Source of the DNA: Selaginella moellendorffii
Taxonomy: Eukaryota > Plantae > Lycopodiophyta
Assembly: GCF_000143415.4 (NCBI RefSeq)
Contig: NW_003314377.1
Coordinates: 248,001 to 312,000 of the forward strand
Length of the DNA stretch: 64,000 bases
Reading direction: 5' to 3'
Both the position numbers and the translations under genes were made by a program. This document shows, piece after piece, positions 4,980 through 60,001 of the stretch (the first letter of the stretch is position 1; every line of letters starts with the position of its first letter). Under the pieces are notes generated by a model. It saw nothing but the letters and a program-made list of their open reading frames with translations. It was not told the DNA's origin and ran no database searches.

Positions 4980-6563
4980 ATGAGGCGTATTTCCTGGGCG
5001 GGAAGGAACGCGGGTATGGCGCTGTCGATGCAGCAGGACAAGGCCGTCACGGCGATCGCAGCGGCCGCCGCAGCTGGATGTAGCTTGTCCCAGCAGCAGC
5101 CATGGCAGCGGCGAGCTTCGGCCGGATTCGCGAGGCGCCAGGGCGGATTTGATGTCTTGAGGTTTGCTTTTGGGGGCCGTGAGAGGCGGCTTCAGCATGG
5201 CATGCCGCGGCAGTCGGTGCTGTTCTCCAAGCTGCCCTTTGATGAGATTGCCTCGCAGTTTTCTACGCGAGGTAAGAATGTAGCTTGGAATTTTTGGTGA
5301 GGTGTTGCTGATCTCTCTATCTCTTGAAGCGTCCGAAGAGACAACGCATGTTACTTTCGATGAATCGGCTGTTTCCCTCCCACAACCGGCCAAGAAGTTT
5401 TCCACGCACAACTCAGCTTGCAAAAATGGCGAAGAGGTTTGCAAAAAAAAAATTCCTTCTCTATATACTGAAGTCTCAAGCTTGCAGGGGTGCCAGAATG
5501 CTGAAACGGATTCTACCAGCCGGTGAGCTTGTTTACTTTTCGCGTGGCCATTGGTGAAATTCATGGTGTTCTTGCTTTTTAAGGTTGCTTCGACTCGACT
5601 ATGCTGCCGCGATGCATCCCCATCCTGAGAAGGTGCAAAGCTTACTTGCTAATTTTTGTAGATCTTCTAAGCTTTGCTGTTTACAGGCTCAAAGAGGGGG
5701 TGAAGATGCTTTCTTCACTGAAGGCTCCTGGATGGGTGTTGCTGATGGTGTTGGGGGCTGGGCCGGAGAAGGTAAGACAAATCTTTCTTTGAGTCTGTTT
5801 CTTCAAAAGAGTTTTTACTGGTTTTCAGGCATTGATTCGGGGATGTATTCTCGGGAGCTTATGGGACATTGTAAGGCATTGGTTGTAAACAGCAAAGGGA
5901 AACCGGACCCCAAGGACGTGCTTGTCAAAGCCGCCGGCAGTACAAAGGCCCAGGGATCAGCAACGGTCCTTGTGGCTGCATTGTTTGAGCAAGTAAGCTA
6001 GTCGGATTTGATGTTTGAGGCTGAGTCGGGTCATATGTTTCAGACACTGTACGCAGCAAACTTGGGAGACTCGGGGTTCATCATAGTTCGCAATTGGCAA
6101 GTAGTTGCAAGCTCGGAGCCCATGCAGCATAGTTTTAACTTTCCGTTTCAAGTTGGAACCTTTGGTGACCATCCGACGGTTGCAGAGGTACTCTTGCTTC
6201 TTTTCCCTTAAGTTCGCTAATTTTCCGTCTACAGGAATTCAAGATCCCTGTCTGCAAGGGTGACATTATTGTTTTGGGAACTGATGGCCTTTTTGACAAT
6301 CTCTTCAGCGACGACATAATCGAAGTTCTTAAAAAATCTCTTGGGTCCGACCAAGTCAACTTGAAGGTGAACTCTCGCTGTTGAAGAATCTCAAGATTGC
6401 TGATAGTCTCTTCACTTTACAGGCAGCTGCAGCAGACCTTGTAGCTGGGGCGCAGGCCGAGCGTTTGGACAGCCCGTTTGCCAGGGCGGCTGCAAAGGCG
6501 AGAATGAATTGGAGCGGTGGAAAGCTAGATGATACCACGGCAGTTGTGGCGTTTGTGACGTGA
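4980..6563 (+). CDS. PTC7-type (clade K) protein phosphatase 2C with probable organelle transit peptide; 8 exons; only intact copy
   Basis: Spliced frame is continuous: PHPEK, GGEDA, GVADGVGGW, ANLGDSGF, QHSFNFPFQ, GTDGLFDN, GGKLDDTT; seven GT-AG introns of about 50-60 bp. Confidence 0.9.
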
Positions 6564-6757
6564 TATTTGAGTCGCGAAGGGTAAACATTTCAAGCAGTTT
6601 TTGCGGAGGCCAGTGTAAATTGCTCAGGCCGTTAATTTTTGCGGTATTTCCGGTTCTTACGCTAATTGAGGTATGACATCCTTTTGATTTGATTCAAACC
6701 GCTCATTCTTTGTGTCTTTGGTGTCCAGCCTTCATTAGAAACTGGTTTAAATCGCAG

Positions 6758-7507
6758 GTAGCTGCTGCTGAATCTTCCTTTTAGAAATCAAGGTTTTGTT
6801 CCATCAGAAGGTTCACAGACTGGAAGTTCTAACCTCACTGGAGATTGAACACCGGACAGGACAGGTATCTCTTCTGTTTAGAGGGAACTGCTCAGGGTCA
6901 CTTGAGGTGTTAGACATGTAGTTTAGCTGGACGATCACGAGCAAGCTCAAGATACTCAAGCTCTCCGGCAACATGATCTCTGGCTCGTCCTTCTCGGGGG
7001 TACATCGAGCTGCTAGGCCTTTGGCACGATGGGATCTTTTGCGACTGCGTGGCTCTCCAGGAGCTCTTCAACAGTCTCACATCCTCGTCCAGCAGCAAAC
7101 TCCAGAATGTCATGCTCGGCCCTACATCTCTCAGCCATCCAAGTGGGTGTGCGGGCTTGGAAGTGCTCGAACAACGTTTCAGAGGAGCTCGTGTGGGCTG
7201 TATCTTGTCTCTCAGCTTGGGCAGACTCTTTGAGTTTGCTCGGATCTCTCGGAGAACCGGTTGGAGGTTCTGAAGGACTAAGTGGTGGAAACCCTGCTAC
7301 GGTCGGATAGCAACAAAGAGCTCACGGAGAACAGCTTGAAGGACAGCTCCAGGCGAGCTCGTGTGGAGGATCCTTGGATACCGCTCTCGTCCCAGTACCG
7401 TGAGACTCCACCAGAAAGATGGTGAGGAAGGTGGCGACAAGCCAATTGGCTGGAGCCGTGACTTCCTTCTTTGTCTCGAGTATTTGGTCGCGTGTCCCGT
7501 CCACATG
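6758..7507 (+). pseudogene. Degenerate LRR (receptor-like) gene relic; also in copies 2, 3 and 5
   Basis: Copy 1 reads SLEVLDM*FSWTI..KLKILKLSGNMISGS; copies 3 and 5 read VLDMSGNQFSWTI; the composite fits the plant extracellular LRR consensus LxxLDLSxNxxSGxI; many stops and indels. Confidence 0.45.
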
Positions 7508-7656
7508 GTGAGCCACGGAATTGTTTCTTAGTTGCTCAAATCTTAATTCTTTCTGATCTCCAGGTTGGTAATCACCATCACCAACTAAGAGGAATTTTTT
7601 GCATTGAGGCTTTGGAGTTCGGTAGGCGGCGAAGAAAAACTTTCCAGGATCGGAGG

Positions 7657-9108
7657 ATGAAAAGTTACAGCCCGAGCTTGCTGTTCTTCGTGCTCCTCTT
7701 CTCCGCTGCGGCACTGCTACTCGTATGGATTCTCGACGTAAATTCCGACTCCGCGATGATGTCCCGGAGCCGAACTCTGGGATCAAACTTCCGCATCAGC
7801 AACAACACCACAAGCTACAACGGCAGCGACACTTGCAGGAGTAGGAACGAGTACGACGTCTACAGCCGCCGAAGATCGACGAGCTTCGAGCCATCCGAGT
7901 CGCTCCACCGGAAAATCCTAGAGTACGAGGCTTTGCACGGGAGGTGCGCTCCGGGGCCCGAGCAGTGCGCGAACTGTAGTACATGCGGCTACCTCGTCTA
8001 CGTTCCCGCCAGCCAGGGGATCGGAAACAAGATGGTGGCTATAGTAGCAGCGTTTCTCTACGCGCTGCTCACCGACAGGACGATGCTGATCGCGAGGTTG
8101 GAGAATCTGGACACGCTCTTCTGCGAGCCGTTTCCATCCAGCTCCTGGCTGCTGCCGTCGAGCTGGAAGCACCTCGAGTTGGCGCCGTGGGACGCCTCCA
8201 AGTGGATTGGGAGCCTGGCTGGTTCGCCCAACTGCAGCCGCGGCGTCGACGTGAGCTTCCCCGAGGTGGTGGTGGCCTATCTCGATTACAACTACAGGGA
8301 CCAGGACAAGGCCTTCTTCTGCCAAGATCAACAGCAAGCTCTCAACTCCAGCGCGCGGTGGATCGTCCTCTCCTCCGGCCAGTACTTCACTCCGGCGCTC
8401 TACAACGTCCCGGCTTTCAGGAGCAAGCTCGAGGAATGGTTCCCACAGCAGGAGGCCATCTTCCATCTCCTGGTGAGGTACCTGTTGCTTCCCAGTGACT
8501 TCGTGTGGGACAAGGCAGCCAGGTACTACGACGCGTACCTGAACCAGGCCGAGCTTCTAGTCGGGGTCCAGCTGCGAAACCACATCTGGTTCTCGCCACC
8601 CAACCTCGCCGAGGATACGTTCGACTGCCTGGTGCAACAAGGCGCGCTCGCAAACACCACCCAGGAGCGAGCTCCCAGATCGCCGGTGAGGAAGAACAGC
8701 AAGAAGGTGGCGGTGCTGGTGGTGTCGCTCAACTCGCAGTACTCGGAGACGCTCAAGAGCAAGGTGCTGGGATACGATCTAGCGGACGGCTCCTCGGTGT
8801 CCATCCACCAGCCGAGCGTGGAGGGGGTGCAAAACACAGGGAACTTGGATCACGACGCACAGGCGGTGATGGAGATCTACTTGCTGTCGATGAGCGATGT
8901 CCTGGTGACGAGCCCGCCATCCACGTTTGGCTACTCGGCGGCGGGGCTGGCGGGGATGAGGCCCGTGCAGTTCGTGTGCGACCAGAACAAGAGCGTGGTT
9001 TGCTCGGTGAGGGAGACGATGGAGCCGTGCTACCACGTTTATCCGGCTCAGTTCGCGCTGGACAACATTGAAAAGTGCGAATGCGGCGTGGGTTTCAGAC
9101 TAGTCTAA
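7657..9108 (+). CDS. GT37 galactoside 2-alpha-L-fucosyltransferase (xyloglucan/AGP FUT family), 483 aa, intronless CDS; only intact copy
   Basis: Type II membrane anchor; GIGNK..AFLYALLTDR, LFCEPFP..SWLLP, RYYDAYL, VGVQLR, EIYLLS..DVLVTS..STFGY, MEPC.H; likely 5'UTR intron 7508-7563. Confidence 0.93.
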   Translation: MKSYSPSLLFFVLLFSAAALLLVWILDVNSDSAMMSRSRTLGSNFRISNNTTSYNGSDTCRSRNEYDVYSRRRSTSFEPSESLHRKILEYEALHGRCAPGPEQCANCSTCGYLVYVPASQGIGNKMVAIVAAFLYALLTDRTMLIARLENLDTLFCEPFPSSSWLLPSSWKHLELAPWDASKWIGSLAGSPNCSRGVDVSFPEVVVAYLDYNYRDQDKAFFCQDQQQALNSSARWIVLSSGQYFTPALYNVPAFRSKLEEWFPQQEAIFHLLVRYLLLPSDFVWDKAARYYDAYLNQAELLVGVQLRNHIWFSPPNLAEDTFDCLVQQGALANTTQERAPRSPVRKNSKKVAVLVVSLNSQYSETLKSKVLGYDLADGSSVSIHQPSVEGVQNTGNLDHDAQAVMEIYLLSMSDVLVTSPPSTFGYSAAGLAGMRPVQFVCDQNKSVVCSVRETMEPCYHVYPAQFALDNIEKCECGVGFRLV

Positions 9109-9399
9109 AGGACGTTCTTAGAAAGGATGTTGTCTTAGAAAGTTGTTAAAGCTTTAAGATTTTATTTTCTTTCTCGTGATAGATTTCTAAGTTGCTCCTT
9201 GGGTGCATCACGGAAATCTAGCGTCATTTGTAGACTTGCGTGGTCAGGTCATACTCTTGGCCCACGCAAAGAAATCCAGGTAATTTGGTACCAAGAGCTT
9301 ATAGACTTCAAATGGCGAGCTGTCTTTTGTGCAGGACTTTGAAAAACTGCTCGTATAGTGTTCTGGCGTGGAAGCTAACGAGTCTTTTTGACAAATGGC

Positions 9400-9460
9400 A
9401 CGCGCAAAGGACTTGACTGTTTACCAAGCCCGGTGGAGAACTTTTTGTGTGAATATAAAA
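9400..9460 (+). promoter_or_regulatory. Putative promoter of the small peptide gene: CGCG box, W-box, TATA
   Basis: ACGCGC 9400-9405, TTGACT 9413-9418, TATAAAA 9454-9460, about 100 nt before ATG 9558. Confidence 0.5.
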
Positions 9461-9557
9461 CACTGGAGGCCCATTGGATCCAATCGTATCGGAGCAAGCA
9501 CAGCTCTTGGTTCTTATACAACGATATCATCACTACGTTTAGTGCTTTGTGGCTGGA

Positions 9558-9803
9558 ATGGATCGTGGAAGGATGCTTCTTGCCATCGCATTGGTGATCA
9601 TGATCAGCGGCAACATCGAATGTTCCAGGCCGGGCTCGTTTTCGGTGATGAGCCAGCAGGCCGAGCTTTTCAATTCCGAATTGCGCCTTCCTGTTGTTAA
9701 CAAGATCCACAATCTTTTCGAAAGGACCTTCCGGAGAATGCTCATCCAGGGTCAGCCCACGCCATCCTCCGGCCCTTCCTGGTGCTGCCACGACCATCCA
9801 TAG
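9558..9803 (+). CDS. Small secreted peptide precursor, IDA/PIP-like SGPS motif, copy 1 (81 aa)
   Basis: Signal-peptide-like MDRGRMLLAIALVIMISGNIEC|SRP; C-terminal RRMLIQGQPTPSSGPSWCCHDHP; frame conserved in all five copies. Confidence 0.72.
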   Translation: MDRGRMLLAIALVIMISGNIECSRPGSFSVMSQQAELFNSELRLPVVNKIHNLFERTFRRMLIQGQPTPSSGPSWCCHDHP

Positions 9804-9879
9804 CATTTTCCTAAAACGATTTTTCATTTCAATACCACCATTATTTGGCTAATTGAAGGGGCGGACAGCCACGTGGCTG

Positions 9880-10900
9880 ACAAGTCACGCTGGGAGACGG
9901 CGGCGAATTCTCCTCCAAATCCTCCGCCTCCACCCCTTTCCCCATTCTTCCCCACCTCCGCTTCCTCCCATTACAGTCACAGCTTGCGTCCATGAGGCGC
10001 TTGTCTCACCAAGGTGAAGGGGAATGATAAAGGCATCTTTCCATTTTTCCCTGTCAACTTCAAGAGACTTGAGAGCTGCTTGGAATTCCCCGAAGTTCCA
10101 GTCCAGCAAGTAAAGTCTCCACAAGACTTTCAGGGATGTCTTGTACAGCTGCGAACAATCAGCCGTGGTGGTGGCTTGCCCTTGTTCTGGCGAGAAGATC
10201 TGCAAAGAGGAGCGGCTGCAGTGAGTCTCGAAGATTCGCAGGTCGTTCGGATTGGGCATGGCTTGAGGGCCGGGCAGGGCAGGAGGGACAAGAGCCGGTG
10301 GTGCTAGAACAAGCTGCAGAGGGAAGTGGGCAGCACTGGCAAAGGCAGATTTTTTCCCACTTGACGATGGAGTCTCATTGAAATGCACGTCTGGTGAGAT
10401 GATCAGCGTCTTGGAGACAGGATTGTAGACCTTGTAAGCCTTGTGTTCAATGCCATAGCCTAGGAAAATGTCGCTTGTTGAAGTGAGTTTTTTTTCTAGT
10501 TTTAGAGGGGATATGGACGCCATGGAAGGTGCGCTAATCCATTTGAATTCCACTTTGTGCAAGAACCCTTGACAATCCTGGACCTCAACATTGGCAAGCA
10601 CTTAAACGTGTCTTTTGGTACTTACGAGATATGTTTCCTTACAGTCTTAAGGCCAAGAGTCAAGCTTACTGGGCTGGCTTTGGCTATATTGTTTAGCCTT
10701 CGGTGTTGGGCCGGGTGTCGTTGAGGAGGCGGCAAAGCCAGATGGCCTTTTTGCATGCGGAACTAGCCTCCGCCTCACAGCTGGAGCAGGCAACGACGCT
10801 CTGCTTCTTGCTGCCAATTGCATTGTAATCACAATCATCACAAGATTAATTCCCGGACGAAACACGCACCACGCTGGGAGACACGTCCAGTTCTTTCCAT
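9880..10900. mobile_element. Old rearranged Ty1/copia relic, part of the cassette (also about 32930-33900, 41360-42370, 51850-52850, 60030-60980)
   Basis: Minus-strand integrase C-terminal GIFLGY..HKAYKVYNP..IISPDVHF; RNase H SKKKSVVACSSCEAE..KEAIWLRRLL..YCDNQ on the opposite strand in copies 2-5. Confidence 0.85.
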
Positions 10901-11289
10901 GTTATGCAATCTTAATTGAACATCACAACAGCCTGGAAATCGAGTCCGCTGCTTCATCCCACCAAACAATCTGATCTCGTGCACAGCATGAAACGAACAT
11001 TCTCTGTGCCTCTCCTGATAGAGCCATACAGGACCTTCTCATGTCCAGCCAGCCACTCGATTATTATATGCAGCACACTCAAATACATCCAAGTAAATCT
11101 TGAAATCCTCGCAGAGTAGGCTAAATGAGTCTGCTTGAGGAGGGCTTAAGTGAGTTGGCAAGGTGTAGTTTTGGTCTTTCCCTTGAACATTGTAAGATCA
11201 TGGACCTCACGTCACTACAGTGTCACCTTTAACTCATTGTAACGCCCCATAAAGGGATTACTGCGTTTGCTCAAGTCCTCGATGGGAGC

Positions 11290-11520
11290 GTGGAAGGTGA
11301 TAGCGCCTACATCAGCTCCGTGAATCGCAACAAGGATTTCTTTCTTCTCATGACAGGGGATTTTAGGATCGCGCCAGGCAGGGATCACTTCGTCTGCATG
11401 ATCGATATCTTCGGCCGTGGCAGGGAGAATGCCGAGGAATTGCTGCGTGCCATGCCGTTTGTGCCGGATGCTCTGATTTGTAGGGCTTTGGTGGCATCTT
11501 GCCGATCGCATTACGATATG
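11290..11520 (+). pseudogene. PLS-class PPR/E-domain fragment (also about 34290-34580, 42745-43040, 53200-53480, 62160-62420)
   Basis: DFRIAPGRDHFVCMIDIFGRGRQLENAEELLRAMPFVPDAL..LVASCRSH matches the last PPR motif plus E-domain consensus; truncated. Confidence 0.8.
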
Positions 11521-11715
11521 TTTCGGGCATTGGATCGACATATATGGCAAATCGCTCCAAGAGCGTGTTTAAAATGGAAATTGGCGGGAAAGCGATGTGT
11601 TTGTTTTCTATTCTATCTAGCTGTGCATACTATCGAAAGGTGGAAAAAGAATTTATTTATATATGTAACTTCTTTCCATTCAGTCAAGTCAGCCTCCCAA
11701 CCTTTGGAGAAACTT

Positions 11716-12381
11716 TCAAGTCATGCCGATGAGCTCTCTCAACTTCTGGATGAGACCACGGTCGTCAATCTGGAACGCTTTTGCGATCACGTCGTCGTTG
11801 ATTGGAGGACTGGAATCAAACACCGCCTTGGCCACCTGAGTCGCCCCGGGGTTTTGGCTGTTGAAGCCAGCCATTGCAACCGCAGGCTCCTTTCCAACGT
11901 TGAGCTGGAAGTGAATGAGTCCCCGAGGGAAGACGAACAGATCTCCAGGATAGAGCATTTGGGCGAAGAGCTTGTTGTCCGGCAAGGTGGTGACGAATCC
12001 GACTAAGAGGTTCCCGTGCACGAGGAAGAGCAACTCGGATCCTCGGGGATGGACGTGGGGGGGATTGGTGCCGCCGGGAGCATAGTCGATGCGGGCGAAA
12101 GCTACACCAAAGGTGTTGAGACCGGGGAAATTGTTGACACTCGCCAGCGTGACGTTGGAGCCGAGCTTGTTGTCGGTGTTCCCGGGAGTCGCCAGCAGGC
12201 TCGACTTGAAGTCCTCGGCTTTCACATCGGCGGCCGCCTTGCAGACGACGCCGTTCACTTTGATCTTGGAGCCATTGTCTGCAACGCAAAAGTCCTGCAG
12301 CATATCTTCATCCGCAGCATGTACAAACAAGATGGAGCTGATTGCTAGGAGGAAGGATAGAACAAAACGAAGATGAGCCAT
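11716..12381 (-). CDS. Germin-like protein copy 1 (221 aa, intronless)
   Basis: Signal peptide from MAHLRF; box A QDFCVAD; box B GTNPPHVHPRGSE; box C GDLFVFPRGLIHFQ; Mn ligands H,H,E,H intact. Confidence 0.97.
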   Translation of the reverse strand: MAHLRFVLSFLLAISSILFVHAADEDMLQDFCVADNGSKIKVNGVVCKAAADVKAEDFKSSLLATPGNTDNKLGSNVTLASVNNFPGLNTFGVAFARIDYAPGGTNPPHVHPRGSELLFLVHGNLLVGFVTTLPDNKLFAQMLYPGDLFVFPRGLIHFQLNVGKEPAVAMAGFNSQNPGATQVAKAVFDSSPPINDDVIAKAFQIDDRGLIQKLRELIGMT

Positions 12382-12438: not shown

Positions 12439-15400
12439 GCCAGAGGAGGGGAGGCGAGGTCCTTTGGATGACTTCGTCGTGAATCGTGCACGATTTTAGG
12501 TACACGGTCTTCTGTTCCCTTCTATTTCATTTTTTACTCTTACTGTCCGCGTAACACAATCTGATTTGTTTGCTGCCAAGTCGTCTCGGAAGTTTTCTTT
12601 TACCGGGCTTGTCTAGAGCCGTCAAAATCATCTTTTCTTAGATGATGACGACCTTGGTTTTGATGGTAGGAACCGGTCTCAGTGAAACTCGAGTTTTACA
12701 CGGTCTTGGTAAAAGCTTGACACTAAATTGCTTTATTCTCCAGAGACTTTTTATATGTGGAGTTTTAATGGAATTATTATGGATTGTGTAGGTCCATTGC
12801 TGATACAAATAAACTATGGGTATATCGACCAAAGGTACGTCTATGTAGGTTATCAATTTTGCAGACAATTATGTTGTCAGAAGGATACTTGCTCACGTAG
12901 TCATGAGATATATATAGTCATAGTCATTGTGATTATTGCTTGCATCATTGTCATGGGCAAAATAGAATGTTTATTGCTGCCACTTTATTAATCAGTTTAA
13001 TGAAATAAACTTATGATATTAAAAAGTTTTATAATTTGTCCCACCATTGCAATCTAGGAAAGCATCCAGTTGGGGTGGTGGGAGTGAACTGAGAAACCCA
13101 ATAAGGTTTAGACTTTGGGTTAAGGCATGACATTTTTGCCTTGAGTAGATTCAAGCTCCATGAGAAAGATCTAACAAGTATTGAGCAAAAAGATCTCACC
13201 TAGCTTGCCTTGTCCTTTGTAACAAGTAGCTCACAAATCCACTCATCCACTCATTATTTGGCAACTTAGAAATAATATAAACTTCCATTTTACTCAAAGT
13301 AGTTGATGGAGTTAGAGGGTTCTTTAGTTGCTGTTGAGCTGACTTAGAAGATGTTTCTTGAGGAGCATCCAATAGCTAAGTATCCAAAGGCCATTTGAAT
13401 TGTCATTCATATCACTATCTATACAAATGGACTAGTTGGATTTTGAGTTGAAATAACTATAACCAAAGGATCTCCAAGAATCTCACTATCCTAGCTAAGA
13501 AGATTATAGCTTCTTCCAAGCTCCAAGCTCCTACTAAACTAGCTCGTAAAATTGTCCATATTGCTACTCTTGCTGCAAGCTTTGGCACCATGCCAATCTA
13601 AAAGTAGGCCTAGGCCTTAGCCTCATCCATGAGCACAAGAAGGGTCTAAAACTCTAAAATCTTTGCTATTTTTGTGTGCCTATAAACCTGTAATGTGAAA
13701 GAAAGAAATAAATAAAGGATAAAAAATAAAGAGAAAAGAAGGGAAGAGTGGAGTGGATGCTTGCTATTGCACTTGCTTGACTTGATCTTGCACTTTGCTT
13801 CAGCTAAATATAAACAATTACATAAAAATTGAGAGAGAAGAGTAACTTAAAGTCCTTCAATCCCCCAAAAGGCTTTTGTTAAGGTTGTGAGCAAGGATAG
13901 GCTTAATATTGCTTGAGTACTTTAGATCTTGAGTATGTGGATATGTGGAGAAGGGAGAAAAAAGGCAAGCTCGAGGATTCAAGTTTAGGGAAGTAAACTT
14001 GAGAGGTTCAAGGTTAGGACTGTATTCTTAACCTTAACGTGAGTAGTAGCGACTATAAAAGTAGGACTTAGAATGTTTTTAGACTTATCCCTAATACAAA
14101 ATACATTGCAATACATCATCATTCTGCCTATCTCTCTTTGGCTCTTCATGGCAATGGCAATGTCTTACTTACCCACCGCCTTCAAGGGATCAAAGGCATG
14201 GGACTAGCACCTTCAAGCACATGTTCACAGTCTCTACTTGGCTTGGCACAAGCAGGTAAGTGCATTCATCTTGTTGTGTTGTTTTAGATTTAGGGATTAG
14301 ATTAGATTTGAAACTCCTAGGAAGATCTCATATGGACGTTTTCCTCCTAGTTTAGAGATTCCAGGAGTTTTCACTGGCAACCACAGTGGGATAGAGCAGA
14401 TCAAGACGCTCATTTCCCCAAAACTTCAAGGAAAACAGACTAAAGACGCACAAGAAAATGGCATAAGAAGAAAAAAAAGACCCAAAAATCAAGAAAAACA
14501 AGAGCGTAAAACAAAAACGGTGGAAAATTATGAAGGAATGAAGAAAAAAATGGATCATAAGACCAAAATATAAAGAACACTTGAAGATTGAAGCCACCCA
14601 AGTTGTGGAAAACTTGGAGCGTACGCGTAACTGTTTTGGCAAGAGGTTGAAGAAAGTGAATATTCCAAGAATCTGTGATAAGGAAACAACCAAGGAAAAA
14701 TTCTAGTGGCTGGAGATGGAGGAAGAATGAAAAAGCACGACTGCCCATTTGGAGACACAAGCTATACAAGATATGAGGACTGCCTTTTGTGTGGTTTCAA
14801 AAATTATGCAAAACCATACAAGCAATGCTATTCAAAATGGCAATGCGACACTTGCAAGCAAGCAAAAGTAAGACTCCAAATCAGGGATGAAAATGCCACA
14901 GCGGAGGAGAGAAGAAAACAAGAAGAAATACCCCAAGAAAACGACACCAAAAAGAAAGATGATAGTTTAGAACAAGTAGCAAAACAAAGCTTTAGCTGCT
15001 TACGAAAACTACAAGAAACAATTTTGCAACTCTTTTACAAATTGTCTAGCAAATAGGAAGAATGCAAAAATGAGGAAATGTTGAAAGAAAAATATGTTTA
15101 CTTCGATTTCTTTGCAACTCGAAGAACTCTGACTTGGGGTGTATCGTGGACACCTCTTTCAACAAACAATTGTCGAATTCCTAGGCATACACAAACATGA
15201 AACTTTTCAACCATTAACGCTTGCTTTCAACACTGATTTGACGAGAGTCATAGCAACAACAAAGTATAGCACCTTTGAACCACGAGTTCGTTGGTTTGTG
15301 GACACTCTTAGATTTAGAGATTTCGAAGAGAATGCGGAATTACTTTACCGACTTCTTCAAAGTCCTCTTCGTGTAATGCTACCAACAAGCACTCTTATTG

Positions 15401-16499
15401 AACAATATACTATAGCATATTGGCACCATTTAGGATGGACAAGAATAGCTAGAAAATTAAGAAATCAAAGACAAGGCCGTCAACAAATTTAAATTCGGAA
15501 TTCAAGTTCAAGAAACCGATGGGAACCTGAACTTGAGTCAAGTTCAAGGGAACGACTTGAAAACTCAAGGATAACAAGTCGAAGGAGGAGAAATTTAAGA
15601 TAGAATCATAATAGGCCAAGATTAAATACAGTAACAAACTTCAACTTTGACACTAATGTCCAACATCGAAACCCTAGCCTAGAGCTACATATCACTCGCA
15701 ACCAACAAGGAAGAGTGCGTCCAAGTAGTCTCAACATTTTAAGGAGTATTTTAGGAGATCTTGCGTCAAGATTTCAAACTTATAATGCAAGAGTTTTAAT
15801 TAAGACTATCCCTTGGGAAGTTCGTGAAGCGATCGACTCTGATCGTGAAAGAGAACATGCTATATGACAGAGGGAAGTAGAACACCACCAGCAAGAACAG
15901 CATCAGGGAAATGCACCATCACGAAATCGACTATAGAAAAAAGTGCACTGGATAAATCTGCGCACACATAGGCTTAAAGCAACAAGAATCTGTTGGAAAC
16001 TATACTGTGACGTGTGGACGTCATTAGAGACTAGAAACATACGAGCAGTAGGACATTTAAAATACAACCACTACTATATTCAGGATTTTCAAATATTACC
16101 AACGACAAAAGCTCATAGTGAGAGCTTGCATACCACAACAACCAACACATCATAAGAGATTAAAACAATTGTTCAAGATTGGACTACTAGAAAGAATTGC
16201 AATCATTTGCATACCTGCTTGATCCCGAAGTTGGCGAACAGTGTCCAAATTTACTAGCGAACAGCTATATCGATCAATTTATGACACAACCGACCTGCTT
16301 CCACAAACAAAATCGTACTTACTTACACCACCAGATTTTTCAAATACAAGACCTTTCCTGAGCTAGACTCAAGAAAGTGACCTCGAGAAGAAACTCGGGA
16401 AGAATTGAGACAGAAAAACTCAATTGAAGATTCAAGACATAAGAGCTTGACTTTGCAACAAAACCAACTTGCAGAAGACTCAGGACATAAGAGCTTGAC

Positions 16500-19400
16500 T
16501 GACACGAACCATAGGAATATTCCGAGAATATTCTATGGCTTGTGGGATTTAAGGCCGTAACGCCTTAAGGGTTGGGAGGTTGGCCTAGGGTTCGCTCTCT
16601 TGTTCGTTTCATTGGTATCGGAGCAGCACGTTCTTTTGGGGATGGTGGGAGAGCAAGACATTGATCCTGATGAGGAGTATGGCGTTAGTGATGATAGCCA
16701 TGACGATGCAGAAGAGACTCTTGATGATGTCGTTGTGCGGCAAGGACTCCAGATTTCTGAGGTTCAGAGCGACATAAAGGACGTTAAGGATTCCGTCAAT
16801 CTCATTAAGGATTTCTTGCTTCGCATGAACCCTCAAAGGTTGAATCAATCTCATGTCCGTGATTACCATTGGTATGTCAAACATGCCAAGGATTATGGTA
16901 TTGTGGAATGGAAATCATCACCGGATGTTTGTGATAGTCAAGAGGTTGATTCTTGGTTGGAATTGTGGGAAAGTTGTTGGTCTCACAATCCTTGTAAGGA
17001 TAAGGTGAAGATAGATTTCTTTGTGACGAAGTTTACGGGCCATGCTTCTTCGTGGTGGAAGAACTACATCAAAGCTAATCCGAAGCCGACTTCTTGGACT
17101 AATTTGACAAAGGTTTTCCGCGCTTCGTTTGTCAAGAAGTTTGAAGAAGTTGATCTTGTGAATCAATTGTTAGAGATCCGGCAAGGGACTCTGTCTTTAG
17201 ATGCGTATGCCCGCAAGTTTTGTGATCTTTGCCTTAGTCTCACAGGCACCTATAATGAGCTGCTAAAGGTGCAATGTTTTATCAAAGGATTGAGCTCGGT
17301 GGATGTGCAGCAGAAGGTCAAGAAGGATTTTCCAGCAACATTGACTGATGCTATCACTAAGGCTCAGATCTTTTCGCCCGAACCATCAGTCAACTCGGTC
17401 AACTCTGGTCAACGAGATAGTCCACAGAGTAGTCAACGTGATGACCAGCTTGCTAATTCTTCATATTCGGGGAAGAAACGGTCGTTATTCCGTTGTGGCT
17501 CGAAGCATGAAAATGGCAGTGAAGCTAAGAAACTTCGTTTGGACCAGCGAGAGAAAGACAAGGCGGAGGGCAATTGTTTTCGTTGCCATAGAGCTGGACA
17601 TCAGAGCAAGGATTGTTCTAAAGGGGTCAATGAATGATAAGGTGACTGTGGTGGAAATTATAGGCAATGATGTGAGTGATAGTGCTTTTGAGGCCATATT
17701 GCTTCAAGTTAGGCATTCTCTCGCCTTCATGAGCCACAAGTTTGATATCACACAGCAGAATTGACCTACTCAAGAATGGCGACATTATCTAAATGGATCG
17801 GACTTCCATATAGTTTCAGATCATCAGTCTCTTCAGATGTGGATCTTCGAGGCCGCCTTGCTCGTTGGCAAGAGTTCCTGCAGGAAATGTCTGTTAAGAT
17901 CCGGTACAAGCATGGAGGTGACAATAAGGTGGCTGATGCGTTATCCAGGATAGTAAATTTTATCTCGTTCGTGAAGCTATCCAGCGATCTCTTGGATGAG
18001 CTTAAGGAGTTTGCTGACTTCGACTCCTTTATCACTGATATTCGCGCGAAGGTTTTGTTGAGGGACGCCTCTACAGATTTGAAGGGTGACAAGTTTGCAT
18101 CATTCGAAATACGAGATGGAATCCTAGTGAAGAAGGGATGTGTTGTGGTTCCTCATGTTGACAAACTCATCAAACGGATTTTGGTTGAGTGTCATGATGT
18201 GCCAAGTGCTGGGCATCTGGGGGTATTAAGAACATATATGTTGGTGAAGAGGCATTTCTTTTGGCCTGGGATGAAGTCAGATGTTGAGAAGTACGTACGT
18301 GGTTGCTTGACCTGCCAGGCGGTCAAAGTTGATCATCAGAAGCTTGCTGGCCTCTATCATCCTTTACGTATTCCCGAGAATAAGTGGGATAGCATCTCGA
18401 TGGACTTTATCACTGGTTTGCCCAAAACCTTTTGAGGAAATGATGCTATTTGGGTTGTTGTGGATCGTTTGACGAAGATGGCTCACTTCTTCCCTGTGAA
18501 GACAACGATAAAAGCTTCTGAACTTGCTCAGTTGTTTGTAGATCGGTTATTCAGTCTCTATGGTTTGCCGGGTGACATTGTGAGTGATCGGGATCCTAAA
18601 TTCAGGTCCAAGTTTTGGCAAACGGTCTTTGAAAAACTAGAGACTAAACTGAGCATGAGTAGTGGTGAGCATCCACAATCTGATGGGCAGACAGAGCGCA
18701 TGAATCAGCTATTAGAAGATATGCTACAGTCTTTTGTGGGAAACTTGACTCGACAGGGAGTATGGGAAAAATACTTGCCTTTGCTTCAGTTTGCTCACAA
18801 TAGCGCTCATCAATCGGCTATTGGCATGTCTCCTTTTATGGCGATGTATGGCTATGAGCCTAGGTCTCCTGTGAATTTGAATTTGGCTTTGGTTCGGGTT
18901 CCTCATGCTTGTGATTTCCTGGAGGATATGCAAGACAAGCTTGAGTTGGCAAAATTGAACATGAGGCAAGCTCAAGAACAAGACAAAAGATTGGCTGATG
19001 AGCATCGTCGTCATCAAGAGTACAAAGTTGGTGACAAGGTTTTCCTTAAGCTGTCGGATGCACAACGATCTCTAAAAGGAAGTGGTAGTGCTAAGTTGTC
19101 CCCACAGTATTGTGGGCCTTGGACAATTTTACAGCGTGTGGGGGATCTTGCATACACTTTGGATTTGCCAGTTAGTTCGAAGATTCATCCAACGTTCCAT
19201 GTGAGCAAGCTTAAAGTGTGTTTGCACTCTGGTGATATCGTGGATCAGTCCATCATCCAGGTTCCAGAGATTGATGCAGAGAAGGCTGGTTCGGCCAATA
19301 TTCTTGCTCAAAGATTGGTGAAAACATGCCGGAAAACAACTAGGGAGTTGTTAGTTCAGTGGAATGGTTATTCCATGGACGAAGCTACATGGGAAACTGA

Positions 19401-19833
19401 GGATGACGTGAAGAGAGTGTTTCCGAGTTTTGGTTATGACTTGGATGACATTCCTGAGGAAGGGGAGAATTGAGTTCTATAGCCGTATTGCTATATAATC
19501 TGAACCGTTTGTTCTATTCTCATTCTCTTGTTTTCCATGACCGTATTGTCATGTGAGAAAGCCGTATTGCTTTCTTTCTTTCGTGACCGTTTGTTGCGAT
19601 GTTGGTGTTGCCGTTTGCACATCTTTTCTCCATGGCCGTATTGCCTTGGACTCCCTTCATTTGAGGCTCGTTTAGCTTCTTGAGGCTACCGTATGTGGCT
19701 GGCTCATGAGGGAGGGGAGAATGACACGAACCACGGAAATATTCCAAGAATATTCCATGGCCTGTGGGATTTAAGGCCGTAACGCCTTAAGGGTTGGGAG
19801 GTTGGCCTAGGGTTCGCTCTCTTGTTCGTTTCA
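16500..19833 (+). mobile_element. Chromovirus-type Ty3/gypsy, non-autonomous (no protease or RT), 112-bp LTRs
   Basis: LTRs 16500-16611 and 19722-19833 (TG..CA, 6 mismatches); TSD TTGAC at 16495-16499 and 19834-19838; PBS TGGTATCGGAGC; PPT 19708-19721; gag with CCHC knuckle; RNase H remnant; integrase; chromodomain LVQWNGYSMDEATWE. Confidence 0.95.
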
Positions 19834-20279
19834 TTGACTTTGCAATCTATGAAGAACAACATTTGACTCAAGACAACTTAGGCAAAACATAAATTCAGGA
19901 AACTTACCTTAATATTCAAGTTGAGAAGACTCAGCAAACTGAATGTACAAACACAAACCAGACCCAATCAAGATCTGGGAAAGAGATCTTCGACAAAAGA
20001 ATCAAGAAGTGAAAAAGGAAGAGATAGAAAAAGAGAAACTAGAACAACAACAGCAACAAATTTTAGAAACGATATTAGAGAAGTACGACAAAGAGGATAA
20101 AGAAATTCAAGTTGCCGAGTCGAACAACTCAGCCAAAGATAACAAAGAACTAAATATTGAAGATGCCCAAAAGTTTGAGGCATTTGAAGAAGCAGAAAAC
20201 ATAGCACCAAAGTTTTACTCCAATCCAAACTCACCAGAACAACAACTTCACCAACAAAGTCTACAACTTCAAATGGCAT

Positions 20280-20379
20280 NNNNNNNNNNNNNNNNNNNNN
20301 NNNNNNNNNNNNNNNNNNNNNNNNNNNNNNNNNNNNNNNNNNNNNNNNNNNNNNNNNNNNNNNNNNNNNNNNNNNNNNN
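20280..20379. other. Assembly gap (100 N)
   Basis: Run of exactly 100 n. Confidence 0.99.
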
Positions 20380-23300
20380 ATTAACCTTACAATAAATACT
20401 TCAAATAGCACCATATCTTAAGAGCCAAATGCTTAAGATTTGTTGTCCACAAATTCCTGATGCTCGCACTCAAGAAAAGCAATTTCCATCTACATCTGAG
20501 AAAGAGGATAACATAAAAATCCAACCTGGAGATTACGATGATAATGTACCTTGTATTGACCTCAACATAGGCAAGAATCAAATCAATGGAGCAATACTTG
20601 ATGGAGGCTCGGGTGTGTATAATCGAGCATGGTATATGTAAAGCAATGGGACTTGGACCCATACAACCTGCTCCCTTCAATGTCTGCATGGCAGACCAAC
20701 ATGTTGTAAGACCAGCTGGCATAATAAGAGATATCACCATTGGAATCAAAGGACACAAGTTCAAGATCAACTTCGTGGTATTAAAAATGCCAATTGAAGA
20801 ATCCTCTTACGTACTCTTGCTTGGAAGACCATGATTAAACAAAGTAGTTTATGCTCAATATTGGATGGACCATGAAATTTGTATACAATCAGACAAAGGA
20901 TAAATGAAAATAGCTACAACTACAACCAAGAAAATTCCAAAAAGATTTCAACCAAATCAAGCCCAAGAATACAATTGGCAAGAAGGCTTGGACGACCTTG
21001 AAGAAGCTAAACTCCTTGAAGCTTACCTAGAGCTACGAGCTTTTCAAGAAATCGATTTACACCATGTACTACCAGTAGTGGCTCAAGACCAGCACCACAA
21101 CTTAAACTCGATGGACCAACCACTCTACTCTACAAAGCTACATGCTCAAAGTCAACAAAGATTAAAGATAAAACAACAAAACGAGAAGCCAACTCTCAAG
21201 CCTGAACAATTACAATCTAAAGAATACAACATTCAGATTGATGATAATCCAGCCCTACAATCTAGAAATGACAACTTTACACCCCGAATTAACCTTAATG
21301 AAGAAATAGAAGAACTCAATCTTGGACTTCACGAAGATCCACACAACATACTCATTGTTGCAAATCTTGACAAAAACTTCAAGATAAAATCTCAACAATT
21401 ACTCATAACTTACAAGGACGTTTTCACATGGTCATACAAAGATCTCAAGGGAATACCCCCGAAACTATGTACACATCGCATAGAGTTACTACCAGGAACT
21501 CGACCAATTAAGCAAACAGCTTATCACATGAATCCAAACTTCACTGATAAAGTCAAAACAGAACTCAACAAACTACAAAATGCTAGATTCATTTACCCCA
21601 TCAAGAATGCACAATGGTTGTCACCATTGGCTATCGTCCCAAAAAAATTGCGAATTTGTGTCAATTACAAAAAGTTGAATGATGTCACGGAAAAAGACTC
21701 TTTCCTTATACCATTCTCAGACGAGATACTTGACGCAGTTGCAGGACATGAGATGTACTCATTCCTCGACGAATTTTCGGGATATAATCAAGTCCACATA
21801 GCGCCAGAAGATCAATACAAGACTGCCTTCATCAGTCTATGGGGCACATATGCATACTCCAGAATGCCATTCGGATTAACAAATGCACCATTTACTTTTC
21901 AAAGGATAATTACCAACACATTTCAGGAATACTTGACTGATTTTATGTGCGTCTTCATGGATGACTTCAGCATTTTTGGAGCAAAAGAAAAACACCTTGA
22001 ACACTTAGAAAAGTGTTTCATTAAATATCAACAAAACCGAGTTGCACTTATATTTTCTTTGTCAAATTAGGAATACTCCTTGGCCATGTCATTTGTAAAG
22101 ACGGAATTCTCATTGACAAAGCAAAAATAGAGGTCATCGTCAAATGACTCCACCCATGGATTTAACGAGTTTGCGAAGATTTCTCGGAAAAATGGGTTAC
22201 CATAGACGTTTTATTCAAGACTATGCAAAGATTGCTAAACCGCTTACGGAGCTACTTAAGAAATCTCAAGTTTATGCATGGACACAAGATTGTCAACTGG
22301 CCTTTGACACACTTAAGGATAAACTTACAAAAGCCCCCATACTGGTTCAACCAGACTGGACATAGGAATTCATTGTCCAAGTAGATGCATTTGATTATGC
22401 ACTTGGAGTTATACTTTGCCAGAGAAAAACTGATAATAGAGACCATCTGATTTACTACACAAGTTGTAGACTCTCTCCACCAGAGATGAACTATACAACC
22501 ACGGAAAAAGAAGCATTAGGAATGGTCTATGCACTCACCAAATTTTGACATTACCTCCTTTCAAACAAAGTCAAGATCATGGTTGATCACCAAGCACTCA
22601 TACACTTACTCAACAAGACAATACTCACTGGAAGAATCGTGAGATGGTTTCTTCTACTTCAAGAATTCAACTTTGAGATTATTCACAAGCCAGGCAAACA
22701 ACATACACAAGCTGATCATCTTAGTCGACTTACCACAGGGGAACAAGTCATGAAAACCAATGATGACTTACTTGATTCACACCTTTTTAAGGTCAAAACT
22801 CAAGGAATGCTCCAGGATATTTACAAATTCTTGACGACAAACAAGATCCCAAATCACTACTTCACAAATGATCAAAGGAAACAATTCGTCTTGAGGACAC
22901 AACGATATTCAGTCGTGGGAGACAAACTATATAAGCTTGGACATGACAACATCTTGAGAAGATGCATAGAATCACAAGAAGAGGTTAAGGATCTACTCGA
23001 TGAAGCTCATGCAGGACGATCGGGAGGTCATTTTGCCGAAGAAATTATGGCTAGGAAAGTGTTACAAGCTGGATTATGGTGGCCAACACTCTAGAAAGAT
23101 GCCACTCAGCATTGTTAAGAATGTGACATATGTCAAAGAACGAAATTTCCACCGAGGAAACAAACTCAGGAACTCAATCTGACAACAACATTGGAACCCT
23201 TCCAGCGTTGGGGACTTGATTTTGTTGGACCTATAGCAAAAAGTAGCAAAGGAAATCAATACATTTTGGTTGCTACCGGCTATATGACAAAATGGGAAGA

Positions 23301-24392
23301 AGCTCTCCCACTAAAGAAAGCCACAGCAAAAAATACAGCCAAGTTTCTCTATGAAACAATTATAACACGATATGGATTACCACGAGAAATTGTTATAGAT
23401 CAAGGAACACATTTTCTGAATGAGACCATCAACATTCTCGTTAAAGAATTTATCATCAACCATAAGAAGTCAACACCATATTACCCCCAAGGTAATGGAC
23501 AAGTAGAATCCACAAACAAAACGCTTAAAAACATACTCAAGAAAATAGTCAAGACAAACCTTAAGGATTGGGATGAAAGAATTTATGATGCTCTTTAGGC
23601 TTACAGAACAACTTACAAAGTTTTAACAAATTCTACATCTTTCAAGCTTGCCTTTTTTCTCCCTTCTCCAATATGCATTGATAATGGAAGGCTAGAGTAC
23701 AAAAGACCCTTTAACTAGTTTTACATGATGGCAACCACTACTTTTTCCTGTTTCTAAGTCTTAAGATTGGAGTCTTGAGACTCGTGATGATACTTCTAAA
23801 TACAGTAACAAATCAATCAGCTGACCTCAGTATTAGTGGTCGTGGGCAGTGCATTCTAAAGCTCTTTGACTTGTTGGGCAAAGTCGGGCACCCATGCTGG
23901 CATGACTTGGTAGTGACCACAGCAAGTTTTGGTTGTTGATATGCAACTAGAACTTGTTTTAAACAGCATATGCATCCTAGTCAAACATGAGGCAGTCAAG
24001 AACTCTTGGAATTCCCCATTATTGCAAAGAAATAAAGAAAAAATATCAATGATTATTCTATTTAACTTTCATTCACCATTTTGTTAAGGAAAAACTTAAA
24101 CAATACACCACATTATTAAATAATAGTTTAAACGACCAGGATGTAATCGTTTGTACTACTCCTATTCCATCTATAGTGCCCAATTGTGTAGTGCTGTTAA
24201 CAATGTAGAGTTGGGAGGCAGCATTAGTCATGTGGATGTCCTCCGCTGCTGCCTGGTTCGAGGAGCCCTTCCACTGTTGTGAGTTGAGCCTGCAAAGTCT
24301 GTTGCAATATTAAAAACGTTTAATTGCCCAGCAAGCCTCACTGGTTTGATCAGTCAGTGTATAGTTTTATCTTAAGAGTAACATTCCACGAA

Positions 24393-24566
24393 CTAGAGAG
24401 TAGAATTTAGCTGCTCAACCAAAGTCCCACCCATATCCATAACCCACGCCTTGTCCACCAGTGGAATCAACTCTCTGCGAGGAAAGAAAATAAGATCCAA
24501 GCACTAATCACGCAAGTTTACCGCAGATCATGGCTCACAACGAGCAACGTCCTCTCCTTCTTTAAG
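24393..24566 (-). pseudogene. ABCI11: 3' end (last two exons) of ABC transporter ATPase ABCI11/NAP14-like; also 36754-36927, 45185-45358, 55640-55794
   Basis: Spliced reading LKKERTLLVVSHDLR|ELIPLVDKAWVMDMGGTLVEQLNSTL* contains the ABC H-loop VSHD and resembles the NAP14 C-terminus as recalled; cut by the repeat junction. Confidence 0.75.
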
Positions 24567-24611
24567 TATGTGAGGTAAGAATGTAGCTTGGAATTTTTGG
24601 TGAGGTGTTGC

Positions 24612-27600: not shown

Positions 27601-29293
27601 AACGAGGCCTCTGGGACATCACCACAGGAACTGAGACACTTCCAGATACAGCTACAGTGGATGAAACTGCGAAGTATCGCAAGAAGGACCGGAGAGCTTT
27701 GGGCAAATTCCATGCAGCGCTGGAAGGGCGAGAATTCCATTGCATTGGACGGTGCAAGAGTGCAAAGGAAGCGTGGGAGGCCATGAAGCAGACTTACCAG
27801 ATCCCTTCAACATCCCATCGCATTTTTTTACGGAAGCAGCTTCATGCACTGGTGATGGCTGAAGGGGACGACCTCAAGGATCATCTTGCTGCAGCGAGAA
27901 CAATCTTAGATGATCTTAAGGATGTGGGAGCAAACATAGAGGATGAAGAAGAAGCAGAGCTGGTGCTCGTCACACTTCCTCCATCCTTTGATCCTCTCAT
28001 ATGTAGCAGCCGCCAGGACGATGATCTGAGACGAAGAGCAACAACAGGATCAGAGGCCGTTGCATTCTACTCTTCTCTCAGGAAAGAAACAGTGAACAAA
28101 GGGAAACAAGGAGCCTCTTCATCCAAGAAGCCCAAGTGTTCTCATTGCAACAAGAAAGGCCATGACGAAGCTCAATGCTGGGTGAAAAATCCATCTCTCA
28201 AGCCTGTAAGGAACAATGCAAAGAAAAAGGTGGTACACGCCTTCATCTTGTCACGAGCTATGGCAGTGGCAGCACTGTCTACAGAGTGCATCTACCTGGA
28301 TTCTGCTGCTACAGACCATATGTTCAACAGTGATAAGTACTTTGAAGCCTATGATCCTACAGCCACAGAGGAGTATGTCATCGTTGGCAATGCCCAGCAG
28401 CTTGCTGTGAAAGGAATTGGAACCATCAAGTTCACTTTACCACAAGGAATAGTCGTAAAGATCCACGAGGTTCTTTATATTCCTGGTTTATGTGCTAATT
28501 TGTTCTCTGTGGGACAATTTGCTGAGGATGGGTATCAGTTCGCCATTACACCTCGCCAATTCCAGCTGATCTCGACCACAGGAGCCATCCTCACAGCGTC
28601 CCGGCCTGGACGGCGTGACCTCTACCGCCTTACCATGCTGCCAGATCTTGCTGGACGGAGTCTGGGCCTACACGCACAAAAGACAACGACCAGTCACTCA
28701 CTGGAGCTTTGGCACGCACGCCTGGGGCATCCTAGTGCTGATAGAATCAAGCATCTCGCACGCGAGCAGATGGTTGAAGGTCTAGACCTGGACCCAAGAG
28801 CCGTTCTTCCATTTTGCCAGGGCTGTCAGCTAGGAAAATCTACTCGCCAACCTTTCCCCAAGACTGGAGCATCTCGAGCTACAGCTCTGTACACACTGAT
28901 GTGTGTGGCCCGATGGCCACCACAGCAGTGGGAGGTTTATCAGTTTCATTGATGACTACAGTCGTCGCACTATGATCTACCCTATGGCTCGCAAATCCCA
29001 ATCGTTACACCCTCTTGCAAGGCCTGGAGCGCTTGGATTAGGGCACGCCTCTGTCTACGTAGACGGAGGCTCCGATTCACCCTAGCAAGTGTCGCCCTGA
29101 TCCTACGGTTTCGAATTCTTCTCGCTCTCCCAGGCATTGCTCTGATACTATCTAACGAAAGGTGAAACCGTGTGATGGTGCTCAAGATCCGTCATAACAT
29201 ATATGGAATGGAAAATGTACATACGTGTGACATGGTGAACCGGTGAAGACTCGTGTCTCTCCACGTGGACTAGCCACGCGGCACAGGGCCACA
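24612..29293 (-). mobile_element. Ty1/copia element with two internal inversions
   Basis: 143-bp LTRs 24612-24754 and 29151-29293 (5 mismatches); TSD GTTGC at 24607-24611 and 29294-29298; PBS 29139-29150 on minus; RT/RNase H on minus 24760-26601; integrase core and gag-protease on plus. Confidence 0.95.
24919..25170. mobile_element. MITE-like insertion in Copia RNase H
   Basis: Perfect 20-bp terminal inverted repeat AATGCATAATACAGCACCCC; internal tandem duplications; non-coding. Confidence 0.7.
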
Positions 29294-32645: not shown

Positions 32646-32891
32646 ATGGATCGTGGAAGGATGCTTCTTGCCATCGCATTGGTGATCATGATCAGCGGCA
32701 ACATCGAATGTTCCAGGCCGGGCTCGTTTTCGGTGATGAGCCAGCAGGCCGAGCTTTTCAATTTCGAATTGCGCCTTCCTGTTGTTAACAAGATCCACAC
32801 TCTTCTCGAAAGGACCTCCCGGAGAATGCTCCCCCAGCGTCAGCCCACGCCACCCTCCGGCCCTTCCGAGGACAACAACGATCGTGATTGA
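32646..32891 (+). CDS. Small secreted SGPS peptide precursor copy 2 (81 aa)
   Basis: Ends RRMLPQRQPTPPSGPSEDNNDRD. Confidence 0.72.
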   Translation: MDRGRMLLAIALVIMISGNIECSRPGSFSVMSQQAELFNFELRLPVVNKIHTLLERTSRRMLPQRQPTPPSGPSEDNNDRD

Positions 32892-41094: not shown

Positions 41095-41331
41095 ATGGAT
41101 CGTGGAAGGATACTTCTTGCCATCACATTGGTGATCATGATCAGCGGCAACATCGATTGTTCCAGGCCGGGCTCGTTTTCGGTGATGAGCCAGCAGGCCG
41201 AGCTTTTCAATTTCGAATTGCGCCTTCCTGTTGTACACACTCTTCTCGAAAGGACCTCCCGGAGAATGCTCATCAAGGATCAGCCCACGCCACCCTCCGG
41301 CCCTTCCGAGGACAACCACGATCATCATTGA
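41095..41331 (+). CDS. Small secreted SGPS peptide precursor copy 3 (78 aa)
   Basis: In-frame 9-bp deletion; ends RRMLIKDQPTPPSGPSEDNHDHH; TATA mutated to TATAAGA. Confidence 0.68.
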   Translation: MDRGRILLAITLVIMISGNIDCSRPGSFSVMSQQAELFNFELRLPVVHTLLERTSRRMLIKDQPTPPSGPSEDNHDHH

Positions 41332-51575: not shown

Positions 51576-51821
51576 ATGGATCGTGGAAGGATGCTTCTTG
51601 CCATCGCATTGGTGATCATGATCAGCGGCAACATCTAATGTTCCAGGCCGGGCTCGTTTTCGGTGATGAGTCAGCAGGCCGAGCTTTTCAATTCCGAATT
51701 GCGCCTTCCTGTTGTTAACAAGATCCACACTCTTCTCGAAAGGACCTCCCGGAGAATGCTCATCCAGGGTCAGCCCACGCCACCCTCCGGCCCTTCCGAG
51801 GACAACCACCATCATGATTGA
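51576..51821 (+). pseudogene. SGPS peptide precursor copy 4, nonsense allele
   Basis: GAA changed to TAA at 51636-51638; downstream frame still reads ..LIQGQPTPPSGPSEDNHHHD*. Confidence 0.68.
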
Positions 51822-59296: not shown

Positions 59297-59758
59297 AGGA
59301 CGTTCTTAGAAAGGATGTTGTCTTAGAAAGTTCTTAAAGCTTTTAAGATTTTATTTTCTTTCTCGTGATAAGTTGCTCCTTGGGTGCATCGCGTCTTTTG
59401 TAGATTTGCGTGGTCAGCTAGCTCATGCTCTTAGCCCACGCAAAGTTGCGCATAAGCTGCCTTGAAATCCCACATACACGGAAAAAGTAATTTGGTGCCA
59501 GACTTCAAATGGCGAACTGTCTTTTTGTCCAGGACTTTGAAAAGCTGCTCGTATAGGTGTTCTGGCTTGGAAGCTAACGAGTCTTGTTTTGACAGATGGC
59601 ACGCGCAAAGGACTTGACTGTTTAGCAAGCCCGGTGGAGAACTTTTGTGTGAATATAAAACACTGGAGGCCCATTGGATCCAATCGTATCGGAGCAAGCA
59701 CAGCTCTTGGTTCTTATACAACGATATCATCACTATGTTTAGTGCTTTTGTGGCTGGA

Positions 59759-60001
59759 ATGGATCGTGGAAAGATACTTCTTGCCATCGCATTGGTGATC
59801 ATGATCAGCGGCAACATCGAATGTTGCAGGCCGCGCTCGTTTTCGGTGATGAGCCGGCAGGCCGAGCTTTTCAATTCCGAATTGCGCCTTCCTGTTGTTA
59901 ACAAGATCCACACTCTTCTCGAAAGAACCTCCCGGAGAATGGTCATCCAGGGTCAGCCCACGCCAGCTCCCGGGCCTTCCGGGTGCTGCCACGATAATTG
60001 A
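59759..60001 (+). CDS. Small secreted peptide precursor copy 5 (80 aa)
   Basis: Ends RRMVIQGQPTPAPGPSGCCHDN. Confidence 0.68.
   Translation: MDRGKILLAIALVIMISGNIECCRPRSFSVMSRQAELFNSELRLPVVNKIHTLLERTSRRMVIQGQPTPAPGPSGCCHDN

Follow-up and report, generated by a model that had tools for sequence, protein, structure and literature searches.

A probable lineage-specific family of small, IDA-like secreted-peptide precursor genes in a tandem array of Selaginella moellendorffii

A few ancestral genes of the HSL clade gave rise to receptors for IDA, PIP, CEP, CTNIP and DCC peptides, and the divergence of the ligands is unsettled (PMC8462819). In S. moellendorffii, three HSL-clade receptor genes have been reported together with SmIDA1-3, whose products have His-Asn ends (PMC8462819); IDA-like peptides of this species are thus already published and are not new in themselves. 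Members of the IDA/IDL family have a conserved Arg directly following the signal peptide (PMC4526919). Subtilases cut IDA at Lys/Gly, Hyp64 anchors the peptide in HAESA, and the Arg-His-Asn end, with Asn as the free C-terminus, is needed for HAESA binding and SERK1 recruitment.

We analysed a window of 64,000 nucleotides from S. moellendorffii scaffold GL377681.1 (GCA_000143415.2), where tandem cassettes of about 9 kb carry five copies of a short ORF. We consider it probable that these ORFs belong to a real, lineage-specific, intronless family of small secreted-precursor genes related to IDA/IDL (SGPS core), which has been amplified with the cassettes and is in birth-and-death evolution. The features of the first cassette and the ORF copies are as follows.

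5264..12381, no strand assigned: cassette 1, whose layout occurs five times, to about 63.8 kb
9453..9460, plus strand: TATA-like box, 105 nt upstream of the copy 1 ATG
9558..9803, plus strand: copy 1, the flagged ORF, 81 aa, Cys-Cys tail, type C
9558..9623, plus strand: signal-peptide-like segment of copy 1, residues 1-22, with a basic start and an 11-residue hydrophobic core
9732..9743, plus strand: RRM(L/V), a predicted cleavage site that fits RRxL
9756..9791, plus strand: predicted mature core, a 12-mer in the IDA register
9804..10701, plus strand: probable long 3' UTR of copy 1, assigned from unstranded RNA contigs and including an antisense Copia fragment (9888-10601)
11716-12381, minus strand: germin-like gene of cassette 1 (the others in the window lie at 34790-35455, 43224-43889, 53685-54350 and 62639-63304)
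32646..32891, plus strand: copy 2, 81 aa, acidic EDN tail, type A
41095..41331, plus strand: copy 3, 78 aa, 9-bp in-frame deletion, EDN tail, type A
51576..51821, plus strand: copy 4, a dead allele with TAA at codon 21
59759..60001, plus strand: copy 5, 80 aa, PGPS core, Cys-Cys tail, type B

All five ORFs proposed in the first-pass annotation were confirmed; they have 78-81 codons and are 89-97% identical at the nucleotide level. The single in-frame deletion and single nonsense codon that it described were found as well, as were flank indels reaching up to the ATG (a 1-bp indel lies 13 nt before it). A look-up by germin sequence revealed the matching array on GL377682.1 and the small scaffold GL377838.1, which together hold six further distinct copies of the peptide ORF. 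The claim that no copy carries a frameshift holds for the five window copies, but on GL377682.1 a 4-bp deletion shifts the reading frame of what is probably the allele of copy 5. The probable allele of copy 4 on the same scaffold is open. In total, 9 of the 11 copies are open, and both dead copies are dead in one haplotype only. A longer ORF in another frame (9392-9697) was rejected, because its start precedes the TATA box and the 1-bp indel interrupts it in copies 3-5. A C-to-T change shared by copy 5 (59735-59758) and two related type B copies, h4 and h6, creates an upstream ATG; in copy 5 this ATG is in frame, 24 nt ahead of the main start, and would lengthen the product by 8 residues.

The gene order in cassette 1 is PP2C (plus strand), the xyloglucan fucosyltransferase gene FUT (plus), the peptide gene (plus), Copia and PPR fragments, and the germin-like gene (minus). 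FUT is broken or absent in every cassette copy except one: copies 2, 3 and 5 carry 3-5 frameshifts each and cassette 4 has no FUT. The neighbouring FUT and PP2C copies had been described as full of frameshifts, which fits these FUT copies; in cassette 1, an intact PP2C and an intact FUT accompany peptide copy 1. The germin-like genes, members of a class often tied to defence, are intact in all five window cassettes. Across the array, PP2C and FUT copies decay and the germin-like genes are strongly constrained (dN/dS 0.08-0.11); germin dosage may maintain the array. Remnants of Gypsy-type and Copia-type retrotransposons (13100-29100), with a 100-N gap at about 20.2-20.4 kb among them, split the array between cassettes 1 and 2, and an annotated minus-strand PAP2-family gene (60686-61626) occurs in cassette 5 only, between the Copia and PPR fragments. 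To a segment of about 125 nt at 10701-10832 the other cassette copies align inverted, and RNA contigs show an opposite-strand joint there; by alignment, this appears to be a small inversion differing between cassette copies. A germin paralogue on GL377588.1 (9703-11166 of the retrieved locus) is 89% identical and has the same convergent PPR neighbour, and no peptide ORF was found at that locus, germin and PPR being what the two have in common. The germin-PPR half of the cassette probably derives from the GL377588.1 locus, in which case the cassette would combine parts of two loci; because the GL377588.1 locus lacks the peptide ORF, it provides no older paralogue for dN/dS.

The anatomy of the ORF is that of a small secreted precursor. 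Judged by hydropathy as the sole criterion, the signal-like core has a mean value of 3.46 over 10 residues, and in copy 1 Ile and Cys occupy positions -3 and -1 of the predicted cut. This cut had been given as C|SRP, from which copy 5 departs with C|CRP. Alignment of the copies showed that Arg24, after the cut, is invariant, and that RRM, QPTP and GPS are unchanged across the nine intact copies. Pro7 of the predicted 12-mer, which is the invariant Pro73 of the precursor, aligns with the hydroxyproline site of IDA. The C-terminal consensus quoted in the first-pass annotation is exact in copy 4, the nonsense copy, and in no other: copy 1 reads PTPSSGPSWCCH, with its end given as PTPSSGPSWCCHDHP, and copy 5 reads PTPAPGPSGCCH.

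Compared with IDA/IDL (Arabidopsis IDA and IDL1-8, MpIDA1 and SmIDA1-3), the array copies have the same precursor size (78-81 aa), a variable pro-region, the Arg after the signal peptide (R24) and the register L-x(4)-P-x-P-x-S-G-P-S with its central Pro. The S(G/A/V)PS core is found as SGPS in 7 of the 11 copies, including copy 1, whereas the other four depart from it with PGPS. The copies also differ in having almost no C-terminal extension, and in place of the (R/K)(R/K)HN end they have EDNH, EDNN, WCCH, GCCH or GCCR. IDL6-8 likewise depart from this end, and Arabidopsis IDL8, also without HN, is the nearest precedent; of the 15 residues that precede the tail, copy 2 shares 11 with it. Since the published SmIDA sequences keep His-Asn, the array genes are probably distinct from SmIDA1-3, from which they were set apart by the descriptions of the latter. 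A PVPP-type IDA-like motif of Amborella and spruce has, as here, ML-x-x-G, then P-x-P-P-S-G-P-S, and a Cys among the next three residues, but it ends in CHN, continues into a longer tail and has a spacer one residue shorter (PMC7552357).

Other families share single traits with the array. PIP/PIPL peptides, the ligands of RLK7, likewise carry their SGPS core at the extreme C-terminus of the precursor and have a tandem gene arrangement, and most array copies of types A and C share with them a His six residues after the core. However, the C-terminal GxGH is absent, none of the copies having a Gly among its last five residues, the Pro-rich N-terminal half of the array copies is IDA-like, and PIP/PIPL have been reported only from seed plants. 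The CEP ending SPG(I/V)GH does not occur in the array copies. CTNIP/SCREW peptides, the ligands of HSL3/NUT, also have a cut site followed by x-R-P and an SGP core followed by a cysteine, but their cysteines are 9-11 residues apart, whereas here they are adjacent or absent, and the CTNIP motif is not present. [quoted passage not shown] A CLE 12-mer starts with R/H, contains GP(D/N)P and ends in H(H/N), whereas the 12-mer here starts with P and contains GPS, and the array peptide is not among the eight S. moellendorffii CLE entries in PMC7552357. Because the defining tails of IDA, PIP, CEP, CTNIP and CLE are all absent, we did not file the array genes as members of any of these families. The proposal of an unannotated IDA/PIP-type precursor family stands for the layout, the SGPS core and the RNA coverage, but not for the tail signatures, those of PIP, CEP and CTNIP being missing from every copy. 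An IDA with its His shifted by one residue is one of several readings of a hypervariable tail that is Cys-Cys in 6 of 11 copies and whose His at SGPS+6 would fit PIP too.

If the likeness to IDA holds, the gene would be transcribed in the sense direction from the TATA box and the signal peptide (residues 1-22) would be removed after Cys22. A subtilase would then cut near RRM-L, in keeping with RRxL as the cleavage motif of SBT6.1/S1P (PMC11371470), while the Gln/Gly bond here would correspond to the position of the Lys/Gly cut in IDA. The released C-terminal peptide, predicted to be 12-20 residues long, may be hydroxylated at the Pro of GPS, the counterpart of Hyp64, and perceived by one of the HSL-clade receptors within LRR-RLK XI, for which the species has three genes. 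As the RHN end is missing, the peptides would depend on another receptor of the HSL clade or on C-terminal cleavage at another site. With the tail diverged from RHN, they are probably not interchangeable with canonical IDA.

To compare the copies with IDA/IDL quantitatively, we used a matrix built from nine Arabidopsis 13-residue motifs (supplement of PMC4526919). The match to an IDA/IDL profile was borne out for copies 2, 3 and 4, which scored 21.1, 17.9 and 15.8 bits, inside or at the lower edge of the leave-one-out range of 16-34, but copies 1 and 5 scored lower (11.1 and 5.4). Markov-simulated DNA (10 Mb) yielded 26,819 small ORFs, of which none scored at least 15 and only 2% began in a signal-like way; the combination of motif and signal-like start is far above chance. 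In the ESM Atlas, the nearest named clusters to copy 1 were PF27884 IDL5 (score 0.90, 176 shared features), the ten best matches all fell in one family or clan, and the matches listed were all streptophyte small proteins. A high score carries much weight only from a recognition value of 2300; the value here was 2097-2146, and we therefore treat the IDL5 match as a lead only. No homologue outside S. moellendorffii was found with the copy 3 query or with a nine-copy alignment among proteins of 0.55-1.75 times its length sharing exact 5-mers. A phmmer search of 1.84 billion representatives returned only five long, repeat-rich proteins, of which the three best were inspected and were unrelated, low-complexity chance matches; exact look-up, PDB, Pfam, Rfam and a metagenome scan gave no match to the ORF. 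An origin as a fragment of a transposon or of a larger gene, which the first-pass annotation had named as fatal to its proposal, was rejected on the Pfam result and on the chance nature of the matches among the 1.84 billion representatives.

At this locus, NCBI annotates PP2C, FUT, germin and an antisense Copia-fragment gene (minus strand, 214 aa, ending at 9885) and no gene at the peptide ORF. The NCBI Copia-fragment and PP2C models have ranges spanning whole cassettes and look mis-joined owing to repeats. Contigs from all four RNA runs (X1, X2, X3 and X9) cover the ORF. X1, X2 and X9 represent RNA, because the PP2C and FUT introns are spliced out in their contigs. Between FUT and the peptide ORF, at 9240-9436, the depth in X1 and X9 is zero, and X3 contains 9421-11079 and neither PP2C nor FUT; together, these observations point to the ORF as a separate transcription unit. 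Coverage begins at about 9421-9437, with greater depth at 9537 in X3, and a TATA box precedes the ATG by 105-106 nt in all five window copies. Because the contigs are informative about neither the strand nor the level of the RNA, transcripts running antisense from the Copia fragment could also account for them. A chance ORF lying opposite or next to a Copia-derived transcript would agree with this, with the NCBI annotation and with the protein searches that found no homologue outside the species. It is nonetheless very improbable, because the signal-like start, RRxL and the IDA-register motif occur in the right order and spacing, no simulated ORF matched, no transposon domain was detected, and the TATA box and the start of coverage fit a plus-strand gene. 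A cluster of ACGT boxes follows right after the stop codon (9868-9877 and 41343-41378); in copy 3 it holds a perfect G-box palindrome and two ABRE-like cores, copy 1 retains only one box, and the cluster might confer a response to ABA or light on the peptide gene or on a downstream start.

Purifying selection on the peptide ORF was not supported. The 11 copies differ by 43 replacements and 9 synonymous changes, a dN/dS of 1.6 that is not different from 1 (p = 0.2), compared with 31 synonymous and 7 replacement changes (dN/dS 0.08) in germin from the same cassettes. Over the signal peptide and pro-region, replacements are as dense as synonymous changes are in germin (Fisher p = 1.0), and dN/dS in the pro-region is 1.0. 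One frameshift was observed in 11 copies, against 3.8 expected at the FUT rate (P 0.10) and 5.8 at the PP2C rate (P 0.02); in the window copies alone, zero against about 2.2 expected from the dead FUT copies is not significant (P about 0.11). Frame retention is thus borderline, and we rejected the argument that intact frames prove selection. These rates, the loss of the RHN end and the nonsense and frameshift alleles, each in one haplotype, would all suit neutral passengers of IDA ancestry in an array kept for germin, transcribed but decaying like FUT and PP2C. We regard such an origin as a less likely account, though one that deserves weight. Against it, frameshifts are fewer than in the dead genes, core residues are untouched while neighbouring residues change, the TATA-to-ATG stretch has a diversity of 0.083 against 0.14-0.19 in the flanks, and the mature region exceeds neutral density, as described below. 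Conservation is confined to the reading frame of most copies, RRM, QPTP, GPS and the TATA-to-ATG DNA. In the favoured reading of a gene family in birth-and-death evolution, selection on most of the precursor is relaxed by redundancy.

Three tail types were distinguished: type A, PTPPSGPSEDN(H/N), in 5 of the 11 copies; type B, PTPAPGPSGCCHD, in four; and type C, PTPSSGPS(W/G)CC(H/R), in two. In the last 19 codons there were 19 replacements, a density of 0.44 against 0.18 for neutral change (2.5-fold, p = 0.0005) and higher than in the rest of the ORF (p = 0.0009), counts that are inflated by clustered mutations and gene conversion; after clustered changes were collapsed, the excess was weaker (p 0.007-0.04). 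Within this region, dN/dS was 2.1, which is not significant (p = 0.32). The tail types diverge by 9-25% over about 55 nt, compared with 0-9% in the flanks. Copy 2 combines the upstream DNA of copy 1 with the EDN tail, and such mosaic copies indicate recombination between copies. The copy-1-like Cys-Cys tail was present in RNA of X2 and X3 and the acidic tail of copy 2 in X1 and X9. Diversifying selection on the tail is possible. That these are lycophyte IDA-derived ligands under such selection, with recombination swapping three tails of different chemistry (one acidic and His-rich, two Cys-Cys) onto a fixed PTPxxGPS core, seems to us rather unlikely. A full phytocytokine or self-signal family, with selected new tails, three recombining modules, receptor-specific variants and a DCC-like Cys-Cys end, is quite unlikely: it would agree with the replacement density, the divergent and mosaic tails, the presence of types A and C in RNA and the five intact germin genes beside the ORFs, but the dN/dS of the region, the inflated counts and the restriction of DCC to Poaceae argue against it. 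The EDN and Cys-Cys tails are separated by five bases, for which sequence lying 28-81 nt further downstream gives a match at 11 of 13 positions (P 0.02-0.03), so this difference may stem from one templated mutation. If the copies were neutral passengers, the variable tail would be the residue of a few such multi-base mutations.

If the copies are passengers, this is an ordinary small gene carried along in the amplification of germin. If the tails are under diversifying selection, new receptor specificities would be arising from an IDA-type ancestor, and the double-cysteine tail would parallel the DCC phytocytokines of grasses. The family fills an annotation gap. Its IDA-like layout, with fast-changing copies that lack the receptor-read tail, makes it plausible, judging from sequence, that this is a new variant of the IDA type and no new kind of signal. 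Three tail types on one IDA-like core and three HSL-clade receptors in one lycophyte offer a small and cheap test.
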